DNA of 63,949 nt, the filler included, from Platydemus manokwari (lineage: Eukaryota): assembly GCA_037951405.1 (NCBI GenBank). It is 6 parts of 6 records of this genome, joined end to end, with 100 filler letters (N's around TTAATTAATTAA, not from the genome) between each part and the next. Parts side by side here need not be neighbours in the genome. Positions count along the whole stretch, not along the records: positions 20,745 to 30,564 come from JBBMOY011200655.1; 5 more parts are not named here. One strand, 5' to 3'. The translations under genes and the position numbers were made by a program. Below, in pieces: positions 2,152 through 30,564 of this stretch. Each line of letters opens with the position of its first letter. Within the stretch, counting starts at the first letter, position 1. The notes beneath the pieces are model-generated. The model was not told the origin of the DNA. It saw nothing but the letters and a program-made list of their open reading frames with translations, and made no database searches.

Positions 2152-3690
2152 AGTTGGATGTTATCCTAGTAACTGGTAGTTTGATTTCTCTTGGGATTTC
2201 CGTGGTGTCTCCTTATAGAAAATATCATTAATTTAGAATGTTTCGAATAGGTTTCGATATTTTATAAGTACATAAATCTAATTACAGAGTAACATAAGTG
2301 CGAATTCAAATATGTCCATAAAATTATTGTGAAACATATCCTATTTCATCTGCCTATTAGTAGTCCAATAAACAATAACTGTTGATATTAATTAATATGA
2401 AGTCTGATAAAAGATTGATGGTAATGCGTATATTGGAATTAGTGGAGTTTATTAAAAGGTAATTATTAAATCAACAACGTGAGTCCAAATCAAATTTGGT
2501 CTTTATTCCAAGCTTCAGCATTATTCACTGTCAATCATATTTACCTCTCGATGTAGAACAATATCTTAAAAACTATTTATATGAGTGTATTTAATATTCA
2601 TTACGAACTTTGTTATAATATAAATAATAATCAATTTTAAAGTGCAACAGTTAGAATTTCTGCATACATTCTGCATCCAAAATGAAAGATATCTACATAT
2701 GTGATCATTAAAAAAATACCATAAACTATATATCATGTATCTTCTCTAGGTAATCATTAAACTTGGTTATTTGATTTGGAAATAGATTTTCGTTGAGATG
2801 CAATTACTAATCTACCAAATTTAGTATCGGTCTCTGTGCTCTTTGTCACTCAAACATTTACTGTTATGTAGCTTTGGATTATATTTTATTTCATTTACAA
2901 TGTCGATATTGTTGTTTCAGCTATCACTGTCGTCTTAATAAGTCTTAATGAGTTCTTATTAATGCTTCAGGTGTAATCAAATTTATTGTGTTTATTTTAC
3001 TACTCGCAGAACTTTATTGTTTGGATACAATAAGTGAGGCAACAACAGTGAAGTAATTTATATTCTATTTATCAGTGCTAATCAATCCAAACTCCCCACT
3101 TTTTATCTTTACCACCAAATGACTTTAACTGTTGTTGAAACTTCCAATTACTATTGACAAAAATTACTAATCATAAGTCATTATTAACGCTAGTTAAAAT
3201 ATAAAATTATTATTACTGCTGTGGAATCCAATCATAACCGTAGTATAGGACATACGTTTTTGTCAGGCATTAAATGAAAATAAAATTATAAAAATTCAAA
3301 CTTACATTACAAAATTATACATTTATTACAGAGCAGGATCAAGCTAAACGATCTCAAAAGGTTTCAGTAAAGTCGTTAAAAAATAGATATATCGGAATAT
3401 TAACAAGGTGTGTGGTTGAGCTTTCGTTAAAAGAAATAAACACAATTAAAGGGGCCATATTATAAAATCTATAGTAATATAAAAATCATATATCAACGCA
3501 AAGAAGGCTCGGTATTTGAGCCTTCTCTTGTTGAAAAATCTTCCTTAATCTGTGCGTTTTGAAAAATCTGGAATATTGTTTGTTTGTCTAAATAAGTTTG
3601 AAGGGATTTTATCATATTTGGATGTTATCCTAGTATCTGGTAGTTTCTTTCGTAAATGATTTCTCTTGGGATTGCAAACGTTGATATTTG
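2152..3690 (-). mobile_element. Two degenerate fragments (about 2152-2220 and 3500-3690) of a probable Gypsy integrase C-terminal region
   Basis: TTGGATGTTATCCTAGTA.CTGGTAGTTT...GATTTCTCTTGGGATT occurs at about 2153 and 3618. The minus strand reads PREIIYE, like the SPxEIIxG motif that follows the integrase core. Confidence 0.4.
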
Positions 3691-5999
3691 TAAATTTGTT
3701 ATTATAAAAGAATAAATCTTATTGTTATCACAGCTGTGTTTATTTAGTGTTTTATTTGATTATAATTATAACAGCACGCACCTACCGGATTGACGTTGCG
3801 CTTCAACCAATAGTACCGAACTCACATGTATACAAACAGACATATTTAAAAGTCTCTATAAACCGAACACATTGAATTTAAGGTATTTAAAAGAAATATA
3901 AAATCAAATTTAAAAAATTTCTACAAAAAAATAAGATAAATAAAATTTAAAATTTTTACACATAAAATTTATTTAAAAAAAATAAAACAAAATTTTTTTG
4001 CTTATGTGACGTCATGGTTACTGAAATGAAAACCAAGGTTAAATAGAAAAAAATATTTCAAAAATCTATTTTTAGTGACTGTGTCAATGCTAAATCTAAT
4101 GTAAGTCAATTAAGCAACTCAAACAGCTAAAACAGTAGAATATTGCTAAATTTAGATATGACGTCTTAAGAGTTACTAAAAATAGTAACAAATAGATACG
4201 AAAAATGTGTACAGCAATATTACGCATATTATCTACAAACTCAGTATATAAGCTCAAACAAATGCAGTTAGCTTTGAATTTATTTCACGTGCTCAAAACA
4301 TTGAATTAGTTCTTATTATTACGAAGCATTATCGATTACTGTTATTATGAAGGAAGTTATCAACGACTATTTTGAAATTTACATTACGAAACTACCCGAC
4401 GAACATTATGATGAGTAATGTTGTTTTAATATTATGCACCCACAGCTGTTTCGATAGCTGTTCGTTTGAAATAAAGTCACCGAGGTCACTTTTTTATCTC
4501 CCACTTTCTTTTTTGATCACAGGGATTGGAGACACATGAATTTTATCCTGTTTGTCCACTATAGCATTTCCAATTCTTGAGTGTTATGAAATTCGATTTA
4601 CTCAATAAAGTTTATTTGATCGTATCACTTTAATGGATTATTTATTATTATTAATATTTGTCAGGATAGTTAACAATCGCTCTGACTATTTATATTTAAA
4701 TTATTTTTCTTAATATAGAGAGTTCGAACACTTCCTACGTACCTGAGAAGATCAGATTCTGTTGGGAATAAAATAGCATCCTTATTTCGTAATTTTAATT
4801 CGATTTTATCGAACTCTATGGAACCCAAACACTGCTATTGTCTACATAATTTCTGTACGAAAAAATCAAAGCACCAAATTATATTACTGTTAAATTGTTA
4901 GGATTTCGAACAAAATAATTATATAAAACTAAACTTAGCACTGCGTAGCATACCCATTTTTATGATTGTAGGCCGTTATTATTTTATAAAAAAGGCATTT
5001 GAAAACAAGTGAAAAGTCACGACACCAAATTATATTTTCATTATAATTATACAAACAAAGTAATACTTTGGAAACATTTGACTCTAAAATTTTTCAAATT
5101 TTTGTTGGGAAGACAACCCAACTGAAATCTAAATCTTAAATAAAAAGTGCCTTGACTATATTGAAGCAGTCAACAATCTCAACCAATTCAAAATCCCAAT
5201 AAATGCAATCAACCCAAAAAACCAATCATCCCAATCGATAATTTTAATTACTGTACAGGGGAAATTTTAATTTTTGATTATCTGATTCAAGAAAAGACAG
5301 TGCTTTGATAACGATCTGATTTTTGATGCTTGTCATCCTTGTTCTATTTTTATGAAATTTTGATTTTTTAATGACAGTTAATATCTTATTCGATTATATA
5401 TTGTAACCAATCAATTAATTGGTGCTTATTGTAATATTATTTTCAATTGTGTCTGTGCAAGGGAATAGAAGAAATAAAGTTGATAAAGATATAGATTAAA
5501 ATAAATAAACACTAAGAATAAATAATTAATAAAAATAAGCTAATAAATATAATTAAAAAAAGTACAAGGAAAGAATGTAAAGAATGCATTTAATTAAGAT
5601 GGTCACCAACGAAGTTGGTCAATATAAACAGTAGATCAAAAAGTTTCTCGATACCACTATAAAAAACTCTACTAAAAACCACTACAACAAAACGAATATT
5701 TTGAACACTTATTTAGTGAGATATAATCGAAGCTCTTATTTATCTTCATCAGATTATTGACCAAATGCAAGCTGCACTATTGTTCAATCAATAATCTGTG
5801 AACGCCAACATATTTCAGAAAACTGAAGTACTTTTTGATAATGTCTTTTTCTGTGGAATTTTTGAGAAATGATTTATTTTCACATTAATTTGAGCGAAGT
5901 AAGGTCACTATAATAGATTTTTTAAATCATATGATTCAGTAATTCATCACCAGTTTAAAAATTTTAAACTTTTATTGTCAACTTATTTCTTCTAGAGTG

Positions 6000-6595
6000 T
6001 GCTTTCAGATTACCAATGATCCACTGTGGTACCAGAGGTTTATTCGCAGAAACTTACGAGATACCTTCATGAGGAGTTGTGCCATATTTGTAATAAAAGA
6101 AGCATCGAAATGAAGTACGGAATTGTGATATTTGTGCTAAACGGTAGGTGTACACTGGACGGACTAAAGAGATTATGATTCTCAGGGAGGAGTTTGAGCC
6201 TTTGGAACAGATCGTTTTAAATGTTGCGCACTTTGGGGAATTTATTACTAAAACCAGATATTTGTTGGTTATAGTAGATAGATTCAGTAAGTTAGTAAAC
6301 TTGGTGCCACTTATTCAACAAGATGAAACAAGTATTTCGAAGGCTATTACCACAAAGTTAAAGAAATTCGATGCTGAAAAAGAGGTTGTAGAATTTTCAC
6401 AGTTGGAGAAGAGATTTTATTGAAGAAAGAACCACATAATATAAAGAAGGACGGAGCTCGTTACGAAGGTCCTCAAAGAATTTTGAAATTTTTAAGTCCA
6501 CATCAAGTTCTTCTTGATTTCCATGGACAGCCAGAACCTCGAGGAATTGAATGGCTAAAAAGGATCTCAAAAACAACGGGAGAGGGAAGTTAGAT
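6000..6595 (+). mobile_element. Ty3/Gypsy LTR retrotransposon integrase remnant with polypurine tract
   Basis: HEELCH..CDICAK zinc finger, LEQIVLN..RYLLVIVDRFSKLVNLVPL (ORF 6148-6423), RYEGP C-terminal motif and purine tract GGGAGAGGGAAG at about 6578. Interrupted by frameshifts and deletions. Confidence 0.8.
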
Positions 6596-8589
6596 AAAAA
6601 ATGAGATTTGTTTTAATATTAAAAACAAACGGTGTAATTTTGAAATATAATAAAATATTGATGGACACGAATTATCTTTTTACTAGAACCATTGTCAATT
6701 TTATTAGAAAAAATTTAAATTTAATTCATTTCAAATATTTAGAATAAATTAAAAATATCAGTGGTAATGCAGATACATCATTAATTTGAAAATGAAAACC
6801 GACGATCTATACGTGACTTCATGCCGGTTAAGTTTTTATATCAACGGACATATCTTGCCTTGACTCTTTACATGTTTAATTTGTTTATTCCCATGTATGA
6901 TGCCAAACATGATCAAGAATATAATATTGTATTTCACTGATGATCAATAACTTCGAGAACACATTTTAAAATGGCCAGGTGAATAGTTTGACGAAGCGTT
7001 GAATTATTTTCAATAAAATATTCTTTATTAAAAATAATATTCCGATAGAATTTGTCTGGATTTAAAGATTAAAAAAATCATTTTATATCTCGGAAAATTT
7101 TAAAAAAAATATCGGTTCGTTTAAAAAAATATTTTGAAAGCGCATTTTAAATAGATAACATGCCGCTACTTTTTCAATCAAAAGCATTGCGGAAAAATGT
7201 GGAAATTATTTTCGATTTGTATTACAAAGGGCCACTTAGACATTTTTCGGTGAAAAACGATAGAATTTTTATATTTATTCATCAAATTTTCAATTTAAGT
7301 TCTTTTAGAGGAAAATTTAAAAAAGGAATCCGGATTACTCTTTATACGTCTTAATTTCTACTCATTTATATGCTTATAACGAGTGTTGATGTTCTTTGTA
7401 TGTCTATTCAGTAATCGCCTGGACTTAATGGATTAAGAAATGATCGAGTGACTTGCATCGAGGACATCATTCGGTTTTAACGTAATTATTTATTTTCTTT
7501 CATTCATTAGGTAAGAACCGATTATCTGGAGAGACATATACAAGCCAAATGTAAGAAAGACGAGAGTGAGAATCAAGTAAAAGCTTTTTTTGTTAAATTT
7601 TTATACCACTACTTCATTTCTCCTATTTTTGGTCTTTAAAATTCAGATATTTGATGGTTCTTTAGGATAGTTCATTAGGATTTACACTGACTAATGAGTC
7701 TCAAACCCCTTAGTATATCAATCAAGATTTGTAAAAGAATAAATAAGTTTGCAATTACTTGGCTTCTGAATCGAATGAACCATCGGTAAAGATCTGCTTT
7801 ATGCAAAAACAATTCTTATTTTTCGATACAAATTGATTATTATATAATCTGAGAATTTACTGATTCGATTCGTGCAATGATATATCACAAAATAACAGAA
7901 TAAAATATTCCTTATAATACGTGCATTGATACGACAATTAACTTTTAGAATAGCAAAGAAATTCTTCAAATGACTGGTCGAAGAAACAGTAAAACTTGTT
8001 TTAACCTGAGCGCATTTTATTAACTGATTTTTTACTTTGGTCGGACTGATTGTTAGAGGATATAAAATTATTATATCACGTGAACTGTAACAATTTATTT
8101 TTGAAAGTTAAACTAATCTAACCTACTTAAGTAAATATAACAAAATATAGTGAGATAGATGGACGGATATAGAGTCAGTGTATGAGATTGATTTTGCCTC
8201 AATATTGAAGGAGACTTGTAAATCGTAATCTGTTCAGAAAATTATATCGCATCTGACCTTTTTTCATCTAAACCAATTGTTTTTCATTAGGAAGGTAAAT
8301 AGGCACTATCTCCAAGTAATATTTATCATTAATTATCATTGCATCACCTTCTAGTTGTTGTGGTGAAATGAAAGGGGCGAAAAGTGATTACCAAGTTATT
8401 TTTCTTGACACTGATAGGAACATTAGATATAGAGCTCCTATGCCATTCTCACAAACTTCATATTATATGTAGAATACTGTTGGGATACACCTGAATAATT
8501 AACTAATTGCTGACTATAAAATTCAGAAGACCAAAACTTTATTTCAACTGCATACTACTCAGTACGACTTATAAAATAAATACATTCAG

Positions 8590-8960
8590 CATAGTTCTCA
8601 AAATATAACCAAAACCTGACTTCCAACTATCAGTTGGCCACATATACATAGATATTTATATTCGAGATCTGGGTGTAATTTTTTATGTCATATTGTATCA
8701 CATTTTGATTTGATCTTTGTTTTTCTGTGTTCCTATTGCGATTTTAGGTTTCGTATGTGTGGGATTGGTCAATCCCTATGTATATGTTATAATGTGCCTA
8801 TGTCTCTTTTTCCAGTTGTTGTTTCCCATCTAACTCCACTGTGTTTGGCTGGTTGCTATGCCTGCATGGTGTTGTAGGCATGCTAATGTTTAAAATATTT
8901 AAACAAGGGTTTTAAGGTGCAAAAATCGTCTTTCGTTTGCGAAATTTCGTCTCCCTCAAC
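8590..8960 (-). mobile_element. Gypsy integrase 3' remnant, dispersed family copy 1 (others at about 44650-44870 and 61960-62340)
   Basis: Direct sequence similarity among the three copies (ACTTCCAACTATCAGTTGGCCA...TTGTATCACATTTTGATTTGATC). The minus strand of the family reads like QLPVGSQVLV of the GPY/F-type integrase tail. Confidence 0.55.
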
Positions 8961-9208
8961 AGTACGAAGTGAACTAACCTTTATAATAATAGGAATAATT
9001 TACCTGGGTCTTAATTAGAACTCCTAGATATATAATCCATAAGAGAAAAAACACACGCATAAATAGTAAACACAGAATTAATGATAATCAAAATATAAAA
9101 ATTAATTAAAGCAAATGTGGGCGTAGAAATTACCAGATTAAAATTTTAAATCAACAATGACCAATTTGGAGAAAATCAGTTTCCATGGTAATTTCAACAA
9201 AGATAATA

Positions 9209-9278
9209 TTGGGTCTATAACTTAATAACCGGAATTTGACACCAGATGTAAACACTTGTGTGTGTGCTGTAGCAAATC
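9209..9278 (+). mobile_element. Mariner/Tc1-like terminal sequence, truncated by a contig end
   Basis: TA|TTGGGTCTATAACTTAATAACCGGAATTTGACA...; 69 of 70 nt identical to 42457-42526. Similarity starts exactly at a TA dinucleotide in different flanks. Confidence 0.7.
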
Positions 9279-9378
9279 NNNNNNNNNNNNNNNNNNNNNN
9301 NNNNNNNNNNNNNNNNNNNNNNTTAATTAATTAANNNNNNNNNNNNNNNNNNNNNNNNNNNNNNNNNNNNNNNNNNNN
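9279..9378. other. Artificial 100-nt assembly spacer (N44-TTAATTAATTAA-N44)
   Basis: Six-frame-stop linker inside an N run; identical at all five gaps. Confidence 0.97.
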
Positions 9379-9613
9379 TAATAATAATAGTAACAGTAAT
9401 ACTAATTATAATAATAATAATGATAAGTACAATAAAAATAATAACAATACATTTGTCTTGTTTACTAATTCGAGGTAAGTAATTTCCATATTAATAAATG
9501 TTTTCGCTTAGATGTATGATTTATCTTTAATAATGTCCGTTTAATAAAGAGAACATAATGAAAATCATGAATATTTACCATAAATATTTCAATCAAAATG
9601 TTAAAACTAATAC

Positions 9614-12600
9614 GTTATCAATACACTGCATAGAACAAGTCATATAAAATCGTCCAGAATTACTATTTTCGCCTGCTTTCGTCTTCTCTAAAGTCAGATT
9701 TAAATTATTAAAAAATATCCATTTGTTTATAATAATCTTTCTTTCAATCTTATTTGATCGTCTTATTCCCAGATTTGTAAATCAGTATAAATAATTATTT
9801 TATTTATTAATAAGTTTATCGACAAACGATTACCATTTTTCGTGAAATCCATGTGGAAACATTTTTTCAAAAAGTTGAAATTGATGATATCAGATGATTT
9901 TGTTGTCTGCTGCTCAGTTTTCTTCGATTTCTGAATTCATAAATTAACGTTGAAAGAAGACAAGGACGAAAGAAAATAATAGAAAACCTTCCAATAATGA
10001 ATCATAGCATCAGTATCGCTTTCGCTAATCTTTGTGACCTCAAGTTCATCCAGACAATCGATCGAACTCGAACTGTTTATATCAGATGAAGGCGTTTTGG
10101 AAGATGTTTGCTCACTAATGATTTTCATTTTCATACCGAATTCGTCGTCGGATTTCAACGTGCTATATGATTTTTCCAGTTCCATCATTTTGAAATTCTT
10201 GAAATGTGGTGAATGAAGACTTTGGTAATTGATGAGATTGATGTTTGGATCAGATTTATTACTGCTAGGTGACATTTCCCGTCGTGGAGTACTCGATCCG
10301 GAACTGAGACTGCTCTGAAGAACCGTGCTTTCAGCATCAATGAAGTTCTCTCTCGTACTACTGCAACTATTCAATGCGACCTCTTTATCTGAAAATTCCG
10401 ATGAAGAACACGGAAGTAGAACAACAATATCGCAATTATCTCGAAGATAAATGGCTGCATTATGCAAAGTCTGTTGTACAATACATGTCGTAATTTGGTA
10501 GAGTCGTACATCAGTGTTAATAACCCTCTGTAATGAATTGTATGTACTTCCTATAGCCGCATCTTCGGCCAGAGTGAATGGTTCATATTCTAATGATTGG
10601 CTAGTTGATAGCTTGAATACAGCATGGTTTAATTTAAAAATACAATTAAATCCGTACCTCTTCAATTGTCTCTTTCGAATAACTTCGGTACATATAACTT
10701 GATGGAAACATCGGTTTTGCGATGCCAAGTAACACTTGACCTTTAGGTAGTGATTGAAGAACTTCGATAACTTCGAGTTTTGTAGAAAGACTGTCAACCT
10801 CTACTTCATTGATGAAAATCAATCGATCACCAGGAATAATTCGACCATCTAAGTGAGCAACACCGTTTGGAACTAAACTGGATATCACAATCACAGGAAC
10901 ATTGGAACTTGAATCCTAATGATGAATTCATAATCACAATTGTAGTAATTTAATAAAATTATACCTGATAATAATCAATACTGAATCCCAATCCTTGATA
11001 TTCTTTAGTTAGTTCAACGAGTATTGGACCAGACCACATAGCAACATCTCTCAAATACTGAAGTGATCTGTTAGTTGTGAATGACTTGATCGGTAGTAAA
11101 TTGGATAGTGAGTTTGATTTTACAAATATTGAGTTATCGGATTTTGCTTTAGTCATTATGGGATATCGATAAGAATCTTCATAGATTATTTTATTATCGG
11201 TCTTTGGATGATATTTAGCTACAGTATCTGTGTGACACAAAAAACTTCCACTTCTAAAACCAATGTGATGATTATAAAGCTCTTGCATCTGATCCAGAGA
11301 ATGATAGTCAACATCAATGCTGATGTTATCATTATCATTGTCATCATAATATTCGTCGTCGTCCTCATCATCATCTATATAATCATCATAAAGCATTGTA
11401 GACGATGACCGAGACAATTGGCTGACATCCACTTCTTTCCTACGAGCTACGACTATTTGAACTCGGTTTGGAAGAGATTTCAGACTTGCGAGTACTTCTT
11501 GATAAGGTACGCCGTGTAACTTTTTGCCATTAGCCTACAATTTATTTGTTTAAACTCTTTGAATTTCTTTTCAAAAGAAGGACCTCCAACAATTCATCGC
11601 CAGGTCTAAATGTTCCATCCAGTCCAATGGGTCCATCGATCATAATGGTTCTGATATAGTGATGTGGCTTATCTTCTAAACCAGTGACGTCATCAACGTC
11701 TACTGTTCCTTCTAAACTAATTCCAAGACCTTCGTTTGTTTTGTTTATGTAAGATATCTGGGAATAAATAATAATTTTTAAATATTTTACTCAAATATCG
11801 TTAAATTAGAGAAACTATTTCATTGACATTGACAACACAAACCTACAGAAATTCATCAGCCTATTTATTTATTCGTTGTTTTACTGTGGGTTGGTGTCCC
11901 TGGTTAAAATTGCTATTACATACTCTACTGCAGATAAACCACATTATTTATCAGTCAACTCAAAACAAATTTTAACGTGATGAGCTAAATTAATATTTAT
12001 CAAGTCAGATTTTATTCAATTTAATAATTCTATCCAATCACAGTCAGATTTCGTATAAGAAAATTAATCGATTCAACTTTTTAGTAATTGGACGTCAATT
12101 CATGGTCTTACACTGATAGACGGAATCCGAAATGTTGGTGATCTTCAAATTGGATAGATTGAATAAAAATGAACACAAAATTCAGTTTGGTATTATTATA
12201 ATTAACAAAGGAGTTTTAATTTTTATCTGACTAAAATGATCAGTTTCAAATCTCACCAATATATCATAGTTGATGCCAATTATTTTATTCCAAGTCGATT
12301 TTATCGTGTCCTCGATTGACTTGTCAATGGATGCATCTATAAGACAGAAACGATGGTAATGATTACAACAATTTAAACAAGAAACTTTACATTTCAAATT
12401 CATTTTCTGCACATTGAAGCCACTGTTAGGCAAAATGTTCGCTATTAGCACATCGGTCTTCGTTGTATTTTCCAAAGACACTTTTTGAGTTTCTTGAAAA
12501 TCCAGAATCGAATTTTCAGCCTCATCTTCACTTGATGAGTTAACTAATTGAGCTGAAGGAGGGACTACGCAGAAATCAATATTTTCCGGACAATTATTAA

Positions 12601-27479: not shown

Positions 27480-28100
27480 ACTAAAACTGATAAAATTCCA
27501 TAAGCGTTGAAATAAATTTTATGAGGTTTACTTATTGAAACTCAATGAGATCTCTTTTCTTCTGTAGTCTCTAAATTTATAAATCTATATTTTTATCAGA
27601 AAAATTCTTTATTTTTATAATAATTTATAATAATTTCATAATTTCTCATAATAATTTCAGTGTCTAATTTTAAATCACCAGAAATATCATTTAAAGCAAA
27701 ATTATTAGTTTTATCAATTCCATACTTAGCGAAAAATAAATATATATTAAATACTTACTTTACCTCTTCTTTTACTTTATTTACCTCTTAAATATAAATA
27801 ACTATAAGTTAGAAAGTTTTAAATAATAGTTGTGCTTTTTCCAATTTTTCGGGTTTAGATTTTCTAGGTGTCCTTTTATTTCTCAGTTTCCAGATGAGTT
27901 TTCTTAGCTTGTTTTGTTTGATTTACTGCAGTTGTGACTCTTCCAGTAATTCCTGCAGCTTTATTTAAACCTACTGTAATTGCTGGTAATGCATCTAATA
28001 TCGGAAAAATTTCACCTTCTTTTTGTTTCTTATAGTCTTCTTTATTTTCTATCAATTTTTTAATTTTAATAATTTCTTTAGTTAATTTTTTTCCCATCAT
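27480..28100 (-). mobile_element. Polinton/Maverick (adintovirus-like) fragment: small hydrophobic virion-type protein plus adenain-like cysteine protease remnant
   Basis: ORF 27876-28100 KEGEIFPILDALPAITVGLNKAAGITGRVTTAVNQTKQAKK resembles the Polinton GG-FLPxL...AGGxAxAVNxxK protein. Downstream TNNFALNDISGDLKL..IIMRN and FINLETTEEKRSH*VSI...IYFNAYGI match the protease pattern INLD...G(S/T)HWV...YFDSYG. Confidence 0.72.
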
Positions 28101-29617
28101 AGTGAAATGAATTATATTTTTCCAAATTCAATTAATTGTTTTAAAAAATTTTCATCATTCATTTTTAAAAAAGAATATTTGGAAGTTAATTTTGATATCA
28201 ATCTTAAAAATCAGTGTTTAATACTAATCGCCTAATTGCTGTCAAATCTTGAACCTTGTCACACACTCATAATTACATACGGCTTAATAATTTGAGCTGT
28301 AGTTCATGAGCTTTCCGAAATTTGTAGATTCTCCGAAGCGATACGAGTATTGTCATTGGCAGCTTTTAAACTTTTTCTGTAACGTTTAAACTCTTCAGTT
28401 GAGATATTTGAGAACAAAAATTTAAGATCTTTTCACAACTCACAATGTTAAATCACACAAGACAGGATAGCGCTGAAAGTTAAAAATATAACAGAAAGTA
28501 CTCAAAAAAATTGATTACTGAAATATCCCATGGATATAGTTTAGCGCACGAATTACCGACAAAAAAACTGGCAGATCTTCATGAAACTCAACATCTTTTT
28601 AATATCTATCGAGTGTGTCTGTTTAAAATCACGGATCTTCATTTTCTATTTGCTGAATTTGTTCATCGATCGGTTTACATGAAAAATTCCACAAATCTCT
28701 CGTGCTATGCGAGGATATTTGAGATTGCTGCCATTTATAGGCGTTTCCTCTCGATTCTTAGTTTCTATATATGGATTAATATTAGAACAAATCTGATTAG
28801 TGCTTATCGTGTCTGTGTGTATCGACTCTTTTTAGAGTTCTTTCTTTGGTATATATATTGTGTGTATAATAGAGATCTCAAGGCGTTTCGAGTCTAAACT
28901 GAGTAATTTTATCACTTTTGATGTACTTAACCGATTTTAATAAATTTTATATCGAATTCAGGGTAGTTTTATGTCCGAATTCGTGGAACTACGGGGCTTT
29001 TACAGTACGGAAGTAATAATAATTGTCGCTGCCTTATTTTTACAATTTTTAGAGTTATGACTTTAAGTTCAGTTGATCATAGATATTAATCTTTCACATT
29101 AAAATATAATAATTATAAACCTGTTAAATTTACATTGCGATAGTCAATGAATCGGAAATTACATAACAATCGTTATAATAATCCAACACAATTTTCTTTT
29201 CACGTTACTCATTTCGCCAATTCCACATAGTAATTCTGAAAAAATTAGCACATTCTTCTGTTTTCAATGTTATTATAAAATATTTTTTGCTTTTCAAACT
29301 TATCTTGAATTTTACAATAACACCATAACACCAAAACAATACAAGATAACAATAAATCTGTAATCTAATCTGATAACGAATAACTGCCCATAAATGTCAA
29401 AATAAAATGATGCCAAATCCAGTTATTCGAAGTAAAATAAATATCGTGTGAATGTCTTTCAAGAATAATATAATATCTTAACTCATTGCGTACAATTTGA
29501 TAAAAAAATAATTAAAAATAATATATAATCATAATATATCATTAATAATATATCATTAATAATCACATCTATTTAAACACTAAAATATTTCAACTAAATC
29601 GTCACACTAAATCATGT

Positions 29618-30521
29618 TTAATTATTTGTGATATTTTGGCAGATATTCCCTCTAATCATATAATCCGATCGCTCTATCTGTTTTGTTATGTCGATTCCGT
29701 AATAATTGACCAGTTGAATTAAGTTGCTCGGTGTTGAATCTTTCCAGAATGTACCCCCAACGATGAAATGCCAGGTATTCATTGAAATGCGTTCCTTCAA
29801 CCCATTTATGTCAAATTTAGATTTACGTTCAATGCCAAAAATAAGGTCCGAGATTCCAGTGTATTTCATATAATCTTCGATCGAATGATAACAATTAGTG
29901 TAATCAATACATTTACCCTTCGATAAATAACTTATAAATCTCTTGTGCATGAAAGAGTATTCCCCTATGGCAATCATTTCACCCTTAGGAAGGACAATCA
30001 TTCTACTACCCATATATGTGCCAAAAGCCACAATAGTCATATTTAACTTGCCTTTAACGATTGGAATAGCTCGAGTTCTGTTTAGAATTTTAAATACAGA
30101 TGGATAACCACGACCAAATTGCCAATTTATTCCCTGAAGTAATTGAAAAACTGTACCAGTTGAATCTCCTTCAAACTTAAATATGAATCAATTTAGTTCT
30201 CAATAATATATTAAAATTTACCAAATTGTTATATCGATCATTGATAAATATCGTCACATTCGGACATACAGTATTGGATTGACATATTTCATGAAATGAA
30301 TACAAGTGACACATTGTTTTATTTCTATCATATTCAAATGCTTTGCAATCAGCCATATCGCATTTCAATGCACATTGTAACCTTGTATTCATCAATATTG
30401 ATTGTAGAGGATTGAATACACAAGAATTCGTGGCTCGATAAACTGAATCAGCATTTATATCGATAAAGAATATTAAAAGAGGCCAGTAAAACATTAAAAA
30501 TGCAAGAGAAATAGCTTTCAT
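29618..30521 (-). CDS. Secreted protein of about 285 aa: signal peptide, PAN/apple-like domain, and a C-terminal alpha/beta domain resembling the TCAF N-terminal region
   Basis: Exon 1 30521-30222 (300 nt), 46-nt GT-AG intron, exon 2 30175-29618. Hydrophobic N-terminus MKAISLAFLMFYWPLLIFFIDINA; PAN pattern TRLQCALKC...CKAFEYD....CHLY. Structure corroborated by the paralog at 21280-22158. Confidence 0.85.
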
Positions 30522-30564
30522 TCAAATATATTTTATTTATAAATGTTCCTCTATTTAATAATGT

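Follow-up and report, generated by a model that had tools for sequence, protein, structure and literature searches.

We describe a two-exon gene of Platydemus manokwari (NCBI GenBank assembly GCA_037951405.1) that joins a predicted signal peptide and a cysteine-rich PAN/apple module to a domain with the modelled fold of the N-terminal, non-catalytic region of TCAF proteins and of the Pseudomonas aeruginosa O-glycopeptidase IMPa. The gene lies on the minus strand of the window, by which we mean the whole 63,949-nucleotide stretch of DNA that was analysed, consisting of six parts joined end to end with filler between them; the part concerned, positions 20745-30564, comes from record JBBMOY011200655.1. 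We propose, with a probability of roughly 0.6, that its product is a secreted, N-glycosylated, disulfide-bonded binder made of two non-catalytic modules, in which exon 2 encodes a diverged homolog of the TCAF_N / IMPa_N_2 domain.

The gene runs from an ATG at 30521, immediately preceded by an in-frame TGA, to a TAA at 29620-29618, and once spliced encodes 285 amino acids. Exon 1 (30521-30222, 100 codons) carries the signal peptide and the PAN module, and exon 2 (30175-29618) supplies 185 codons before the stop, coordinates and exon sizes (29618-30521; 100 + 185 amino acids) that are identical to those put forward in an earlier reading of the sequence alone. The two domains meet at a conserved phase-0 intron position: the GT and AG are unchanged at the identical codon boundary in six loci, namely this gene (copy B), a neighbouring paralog (copy A) and four further loci (L001, L002, L003 and L004). 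The 285-codon frame is open, its start, splice sites and stop are intact, the family-invariant Cys, Gly and Trp residues are all retained, and the open reading frame (ORF) is kept at 31-44% amino-acid identity across about 30 relatives; because of the invariant splice dinucleotides and this conservation, we regard the gene as more than a chance ORF. The host DNA is AT-rich (about 28% GC; 17-34% per 500 nucleotides within positions 20745-30564), with GT-AG introns of 44-60 nucleotides and standard stop-codon usage. A ciliate source was rejected, the ORF being free of in-frame TAA and TAG. The exons were searched separately, and the sole two-domain query was P0001, an ORF from locus L001 in which a 48-nucleotide intron is read through in frame.

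Exon 2 was modelled with AlphaFold2 from a 29-sequence family alignment, giving a predicted local distance difference test score (pLDDT) of 84.6 and a predicted template-modelling score (pTM) of 0.83. When this model was compared with the PDB using Foldseek, only IMPa was significant (E = 3.7e-5 to 9.9e-5, probability 1.00), and VIA-align superposed 174-175 of the 185 residues on IMPa residues 79-302 at Z = 12.8-12.9 with a root-mean-square deviation of 3.4-3.5 Å; the runner-up in the VIA re-alignment of Foldseek's top chains scored Z = 4.0. An exhaustive comparison against 48,161 chains found IMPa alone at a Z of at least 5, the next chain having Z = 3.8. Within the ESM Atlas, 8 of 10 rows were clusters carrying PF27016 (TCAF_N) or PF18650 (IMPa_N_2), with template-modelling (TM) scores of 0.69-0.71, and unrelated rows gave 0.39-0.44; the clusters matched were chordate TCAF, a 211-residue TCAF_N-only cluster, bacterial M60-like peptidases, archaeal proteins combining He_PIG with TCAF_N, and IMPa. 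As modelled, exon 2 folds like the non-catalytic domain at the N-terminus of TCAF and IMPa. The resemblance to the TCAF N-terminus noticed in the sequence-only reading therefore stands at the level of the fold but not at that of sequence or profile, where no link was found; first seen in sequence alone, it was borne out solely through structure prediction. A class-I glutamine amidotransferase (GATase)-like fold, offered there as an alternative, was discarded: no GATase, DJ-1 or ThuA chain reached a Z of at least 3, and the family has no conserved His or acidic residue.

These matches set the protein beside several known systems, from each of which it differs. TCAF1 and TCAF2 (FAM115A/C) are chordate TRPM8 channel-associated factors, cytosolic partners that are not known to have a signal peptide. 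Over 169 residues the exon-2 model superposes on the N-terminal domain of chordate TCAF cluster representatives with a query-based TM of 0.71 (0.69/0.62 for the 211-residue TCAF_N-only cluster), with no detectable similarity in sequence; TCAFs are, however, proteins of about 830-920 amino acids in which TCAF_N is followed by TCAF_helical and Peptidase_M60, whereas the 285-residue protein described here has a predicted signal peptide and a PAN module and none of the helical or M60-like parts. IMPa (PF18650; PDB 5KDV, 5KDW, 5KDX and 7JTV) is the sole solved structure with the exon-2 fold, and both proteins would be extracellular, but in IMPa the N-terminal domain serves a secreted O-glycopeptidase of 890 residues as an accessory module, while here it is peptidase-free, fused to PAN and 9-12% identical. 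Archaeal He_PIG + TCAF_N proteins and bacterial TCAF_N + M60-like_N proteins (some with Peptidase_M60) have the same fold (TM 0.70-0.71) but are prokaryotic and have other partners, Ig-like or peptidase; they show the domain to be mobile, serving as a module in several extracellular architectures, some of them without M60.

Exon 1 matches Pfam PAN_1 (PF00024) at 21.4 bits, which is exactly the gathering score (E = 2.3e-4), and three relatives match over the identical profile span at 17.2-19.1 bits, under the cutoff. A profile built from four exon-1 peptides gave 19 matches in the PDB, all of them PAN/apple modules, led by the HGF N domain (E = 0.0018) and followed by MIC4, plasminogen and SML-2. 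Seven invariant Cys residues include a C-x3-C...C-K-A-F...C core that aligns to the HGF N domain. The Cys-rich PAN-type exon claimed in the sequence-only reading is real. Likeness to known PAN/apple proteins (the HGF N domain, the plasminogen PAN, apicomplexan MIC4 and SML-2) lies in this core and in the PAN_1 match, which here falls at or below the Pfam threshold; those proteins have four to six conserved Cys, compared with seven here. For the PAN exon, four sequences gave only a poor AlphaFold2 model (pLDDT 51.8), and an ESM Atlas feature search with P0001 returned weak PAN clusters only (0.77). An NCBIfam match of exon 1 to XopB scored 11.6 bits, where the cutoff is 700, and was set aside as noise. 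To our knowledge, the partners of PAN modules are kringles, proteases, further apple repeats, and lectin or kinase domains, and do not include a TCAF_N-like domain.

The relatives of the gene are all unnamed sequences. When 1.84 billion representatives were searched exhaustively with HMMER, 28 proteins were retrieved (E = 1.6e-39 to 8e-4) of at most 44% identity, and a profile search contributed one further relative, for a family of about 30. All 20 of the 20 clusters examined are unnamed, contain one or two sequences each and come from ENA or JGI metagenome or Logan assemblies; there was no self-match, this genome being absent from the protein collections searched. At least six distinct relatives come from just two ENA samples, the JGI metagenomes supplied one locus, and 185,579 bacterial and archaeal species genomes contained no sequence relative. 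Most relatives consist of the exon-2 ORF alone, as called by prokaryotic gene finders, but an exon with a predicted signal peptide and PAN lies upstream wherever the DNA is readable, in L001, L002 and L004 and, in degenerate form, in L003. In L003 (positions 60-230) the first conserved Cys of the PAN exon is replaced by Tyr, the C-x3-C part is gone and the frame changes, with exon 2 intact; it is a pseudogene, or else a family member from which PAN has been lost. The closest relative (44% identity) is L001, whose contig has 40% GC, compared with 27-31% in the window and L002-L004, indicating that the family spans organisms differing in base composition; its 48-nucleotide intron ends in a nematode-like TTTTCAG.

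As far as these sequence searches reach, which is short of an InterPro-style survey of architectures, the combination of PAN with a stand-alone TCAF_N-like domain is without match among the annotated proteins found. What is new is the arrangement of predicted signal peptide, PAN and TCAF_N-like domain without helical or M60 parts, together with a sequence family missing from annotated databases and its presence in a eukaryote; the exon-2 fold and both modules are of kinds already known. To speak of a candidate for a new system, as had been done at first, was an overstatement, since we are dealing with a new domain architecture and family and not with a system of several parts.

The N-terminus begins with MK, continues with 18 hydrophobic residues (Kyte-Doolittle mean >2) and then reads D-I-N-A, with a likely cut before the following D as judged by inspection. 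The n-, h- and c-regions and an Ala at position -1 are recognisable in the same way and recur in relatives, and a putative hydrophobic signal sequence is common to three loci. A second in-frame Met at residue 10 (30494) lines up with the start Met of relatives L001 and L002, whose signal peptides are short and typical, with hydrophobic cores of 9-10 residues, a small residue at -1 and a conserved Asp next; the I-N-A/D site is retained in both copies within the window. A start from Met1 or Met10 alike would yield a signal peptide, in agreement with the one first proposed, and Met10 as the true start may give a shorter and more typical one. The mature protein would have 10 Cys and five N-X-S/T sequons. 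Judged from these sequence features, the protein is probably secreted.

The gene has no M60 peptidase part. The translation contains no HExxH and no Pfam peptidase match, the coding sequence ends 185 residues into exon 2 (as it does in copy A and L002), and the helical, M60-like_N and M60 peptidase parts are all absent, as the HExxH-free sequence had initially led one to expect; lacking its helical and metallopeptidase parts, the protein cannot be a peptidase, and that function was rejected. The conserved columns of exon 2 are Cys, Gly, aromatic, aliphatic, Thr and Asn, and no conserved set of His, Asp, Glu or Ser was found in the family alignment, which argues against catalysis. A Cys at position 162 is accompanied by a Cys in the C-terminal tail in 10 of the 12 relatives that have it, compared with 1 of the 14 that lack it, a disulfide pattern that points to an extracellular protein. 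The subfamily with this extra Cys162, located after a conserved Y-G-I, and with a longer Cys-bearing tail comprises P0002, P0004, P0006, P0010, P0011, P0014, P0015, P0017, P0022 and P0026; the window protein and L002 form a short-tailed subgroup that has neither Cys of the pair and ends in N-x-T-N-N.

From these elements we propose the following course of events. A cleavable signal peptide would export the protein, the PAN/apple module of exon 1 would serve as a first non-catalytic binding module, and the exon-2 domain would share ancestry, at great divergence, with the accessory domain found at the N-terminus of TCAF and of IMPa-type M60/M88 O-glycopeptidases. The protein would most likely act outside the cell in a lectin-like or adhesin-like manner, with a glycoprotein, O-glycopeptide or glycan as ligand, and the gene belongs to a lineage-restricted multigene family. 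PAN modules are extracellular units that bind protein or carbohydrate. Noach and Boraston (2021) reportedly described the IMPa domain as a domain for the proline-specific recognition of glycopeptides (PDB 7JTV), an account that reaches us second-hand through PMC10550946. A secreted binder of glycoproteins or glycans is proposed because PAN modules act as binding units and because the IMPa N-terminal domain (PF18650) is reported to be a non-catalytic accessory module with a ligand-bound exosite (PMC10550946). This reported glycopeptide exosite also lends some support to the mucus- or glycan-binding role suggested in the sequence-only reading, which by analogy may apply here. Exon shuffling at the phase-0 intron, suggested at the same time, may be how the architecture arose. 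Our search of the literature on TCAF_N / IMPa_N_2, a recently delimited domain, found nothing besides the IMPa exosite.

The extent of the family within the genome was gauged from 566 Logan contigs of at least 90% likeness, drawn from the sole run containing the sequence. Depth was about 11.5 over the unique single-copy flank, while summed depth came to 52-137 in 29972-30105, 233 at the start of exon 2, 575 in 30173-30239 and 1671 in 30240-30306, which is the PAN exon's 3' end; to a weaker degree it was raised across 29972-30507. Summed depth is not a copy number, but the difference between 1671 and about 11.5 indicates that the 3' end of the PAN exon is present in very many near-identical copies; in loci that come from other samples (L002 and L003), the same stretch (30240-30306) is also the one whose nucleotides are best conserved. 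The depth pattern suggests a large family in which the N-terminal exon is conserved and the C-terminal domain evolves faster. A tentative extension, which we hold to be possible but well short of probable, is that there are some 100 or more secreted PAN + TCAF_N-like members, in which the diversifying domain would form a repertoire for recognising glycans or glycopeptides, an innate-immune-like toolkit or one for interaction with host or prey, and the conserved N-terminal exon would provide export and anchoring. Were this so, it would point to extracellular ligand recognition as the ancestral role of TCAF_N in the vertebrate TRPM8 regulators; we know of no report on the function of TCAF_N in those regulators.

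Several points weigh against the reading of a secreted two-module binder, and we take them together with the alternatives that they bear on. In the literature consulted, ligand binding by the domain is documented second-hand and for IMPa only. No sequence or profile link between exon 2 and TCAF_N or IMPa_N_2 emerged from Pfam, PDB-profile or word searches: exon 2 gave no Pfam match even with E allowed up to 10, and no NCBIfam match, and the 29 relatives searched against Pfam at E up to 1 matched neither domain, their scattered single-member matches being noise. PF18650 is expected to be in the Pfam copy searched, being cited in a 2023 paper (PMC10550946), and the presence of PF27016 there is uncertain. 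Against the PDB, the best match of exon 2 by sequence was SA0254 (E = 0.34) and that of the family profile a chickpea lectin (E = 1.1), both at chance level and with IMPa not recovered by the profile. A word-index protein search returned nothing for exon 2 and only family members, none annotated, for the family profile, and an ESM Atlas feature search with exon 2 gave no usable match. The structurally aligned residues are just 9-12% identical, the Atlas comparison sets prediction against prediction, and IMPa was already in the PDB training set of AlphaFold2.

The missing sequence link and the low identity would suit an exon 2 that is a lineage-specific orphan domain, with a likeness to IMPa and TCAF owed to convergence or to a prediction artefact and with a function unrelated to glycoprotein recognition, the more so as three-layer alpha/beta folds recur among unrelated families. 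We consider this unlikely, although it is the best-surviving of the alternatives. The match to IMPa takes in nearly the whole domain at a Z that none of the other chains among the 48,161 approaches, all of them staying below 5, whereas a generic Rossmann-like fold would have drawn many matches of intermediate Z; moreover, an independent library yielded, at TM of about 0.70, eight TCAF_N / IMPa_N_2 clusters that between them represent three domains of life.

A second alternative, slightly less likely again, is that the ORF is intact by chance, being a non-functional or decaying, unexpressed member of a repeat-like family amplified in a transposon-rich region. The gene adjoins retroelement debris, and its neighbour copy A is dead, with an in-frame TGA at 21439-21441 in place of a conserved PAN Cys, a 21-nucleotide deletion after 21709, a 6-nucleotide insertion at 21821-21826 and a frameshifting 10-nucleotide deletion after 22008. 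Similarity between the two copies extends about 45 nucleotides 5' of the ATG and about 90 beyond the stop, and the intron is their most diverged segment (33% different). The ratio of nonsynonymous to synonymous substitution (dN/dS) between B and A is 0.45 (0.37 in exon 1 and 0.49 in exon 2), a value that includes the pseudogene lineage and amounts to only moderate constraint. None of the RNA runs searched for the locus carries its sequence, and splicing and expression are predicted. The degenerate PAN exon of L003 and the very many partial near-copies in the run fit decay as well. Set against this are the intact start, splice sites and stop of an open 285-codon frame that keeps the family-invariant residues, the share of the pseudogene lineage in the dN/dS value, and the shape of the depth profile, which peaks at the conserved end of exon 1 alone and is not uniform, unlike that of a recently amplified mobile element.

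It is improbable that an uncleaved signal anchor instead retains the product, as a type II membrane protein or cell-surface receptor. The 18-residue hydrophobic stretch that follows a Met1 start falls in the upper length range of signal peptides and could act as such an anchor, but the relatives start at the aligned Met10 with cores of ordinary length and a small residue before the conserved Asp, and both window copies keep the cleavage-like site. Least probable is an enzymatic C-terminal domain, such as a hydrolase or a class-I glutamine amidotransferase-like enzyme, for which the three-layer alpha/beta fold, a conserved Cys and frequent His ("CYH" and "WH" motifs) might speak, since the structural matches with Z of at least 3 include no GATase, DJ-1 or ThuA chain, the His are not conserved across the family, the conserved Cys behave as disulfide partners, and the homologous IMPa domain is a non-catalytic accessory domain.

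If the product is a secreted two-module binder, as we prefer, it would be a stand-alone eukaryotic version of the domain, without peptidase and fused to PAN, and would mark the domain as an independent mobile module that is workable outside the cell. It would likewise support a role of the domain as a unit of ligand (glycopeptide) recognition rather than as a mere scaffold for M60, and at 185 residues the domain offers a small test object for binding specificity. The family escapes annotation, its roughly 30 relatives being unnamed metagenomic ORFs whose domain no sequence method names. It may also be strongly expanded in P. manokwari, and such expansion is typical of recognition or interaction repertoires.

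Table 1. Positions of the gene, its parts and neighbouring features within the window
Feature	Position	Strand	Remarks
Complete coding sequence (copy B)	29618..30521	-	ATG, GT..AG intron, TAA; relatives stop at equivalent position
Signal peptide, residues 1-24	30450..30521	-	Judged by inspection; likely cut after I-N-A
PAN/apple module	30222..30449	-	7 invariant Cys, 2 N-glycosylation sequons (NKT, NVT); Pfam PAN_1
Intron	30221-30176	-	46 nucleotides, GTAAAT...TTTAAG, phase 0; separates both domains
Exon 2 alpha/beta domain, 185 amino acids	29618..30175	-	TCAF_N / IMPa N-terminal-domain fold (model); 3 Cys, 3 N-glycosylation sequons
Inverted paralog (copy A), pseudogene	21280..22158	+	About 82% nucleotide identity to copy B (29618..30521)
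RVT_1 fragment	23125-23496	-	16.4 bits, below cutoff
gag-like ORFs	24757-25221 (ending in C-x2-C zinc-knuckle start) and 25314-25568	-	Part of the degraded retroelement material

The remaining features of this part of the window concern the surroundings of the two copies (Table 1). Rfam, tRNA and tandem-repeat scans of positions 20745-30564 found nothing relevant, with no RNA genes between the copies, and a 128-residue ORF at 28511-28897 had no Pfam match. The roughly 7.4 kb that separate the copies contain degraded material resembling a long-terminal-repeat retrotransposon (22578-25568, minus strand), in which the RVT_1 fragment and the gag-like ORFs lie. A high-copy repeat at 28632-28966 reaches a summed contig depth of 3000-12000, with many paralogous joints and loose ends. 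We also observed a perfect 30-nucleotide direct repeat (26489-26518 and 26643-26672, 154 nucleotides apart), and the minus-strand ORFs that overlap it share the peptide YPLVDDYQSL.
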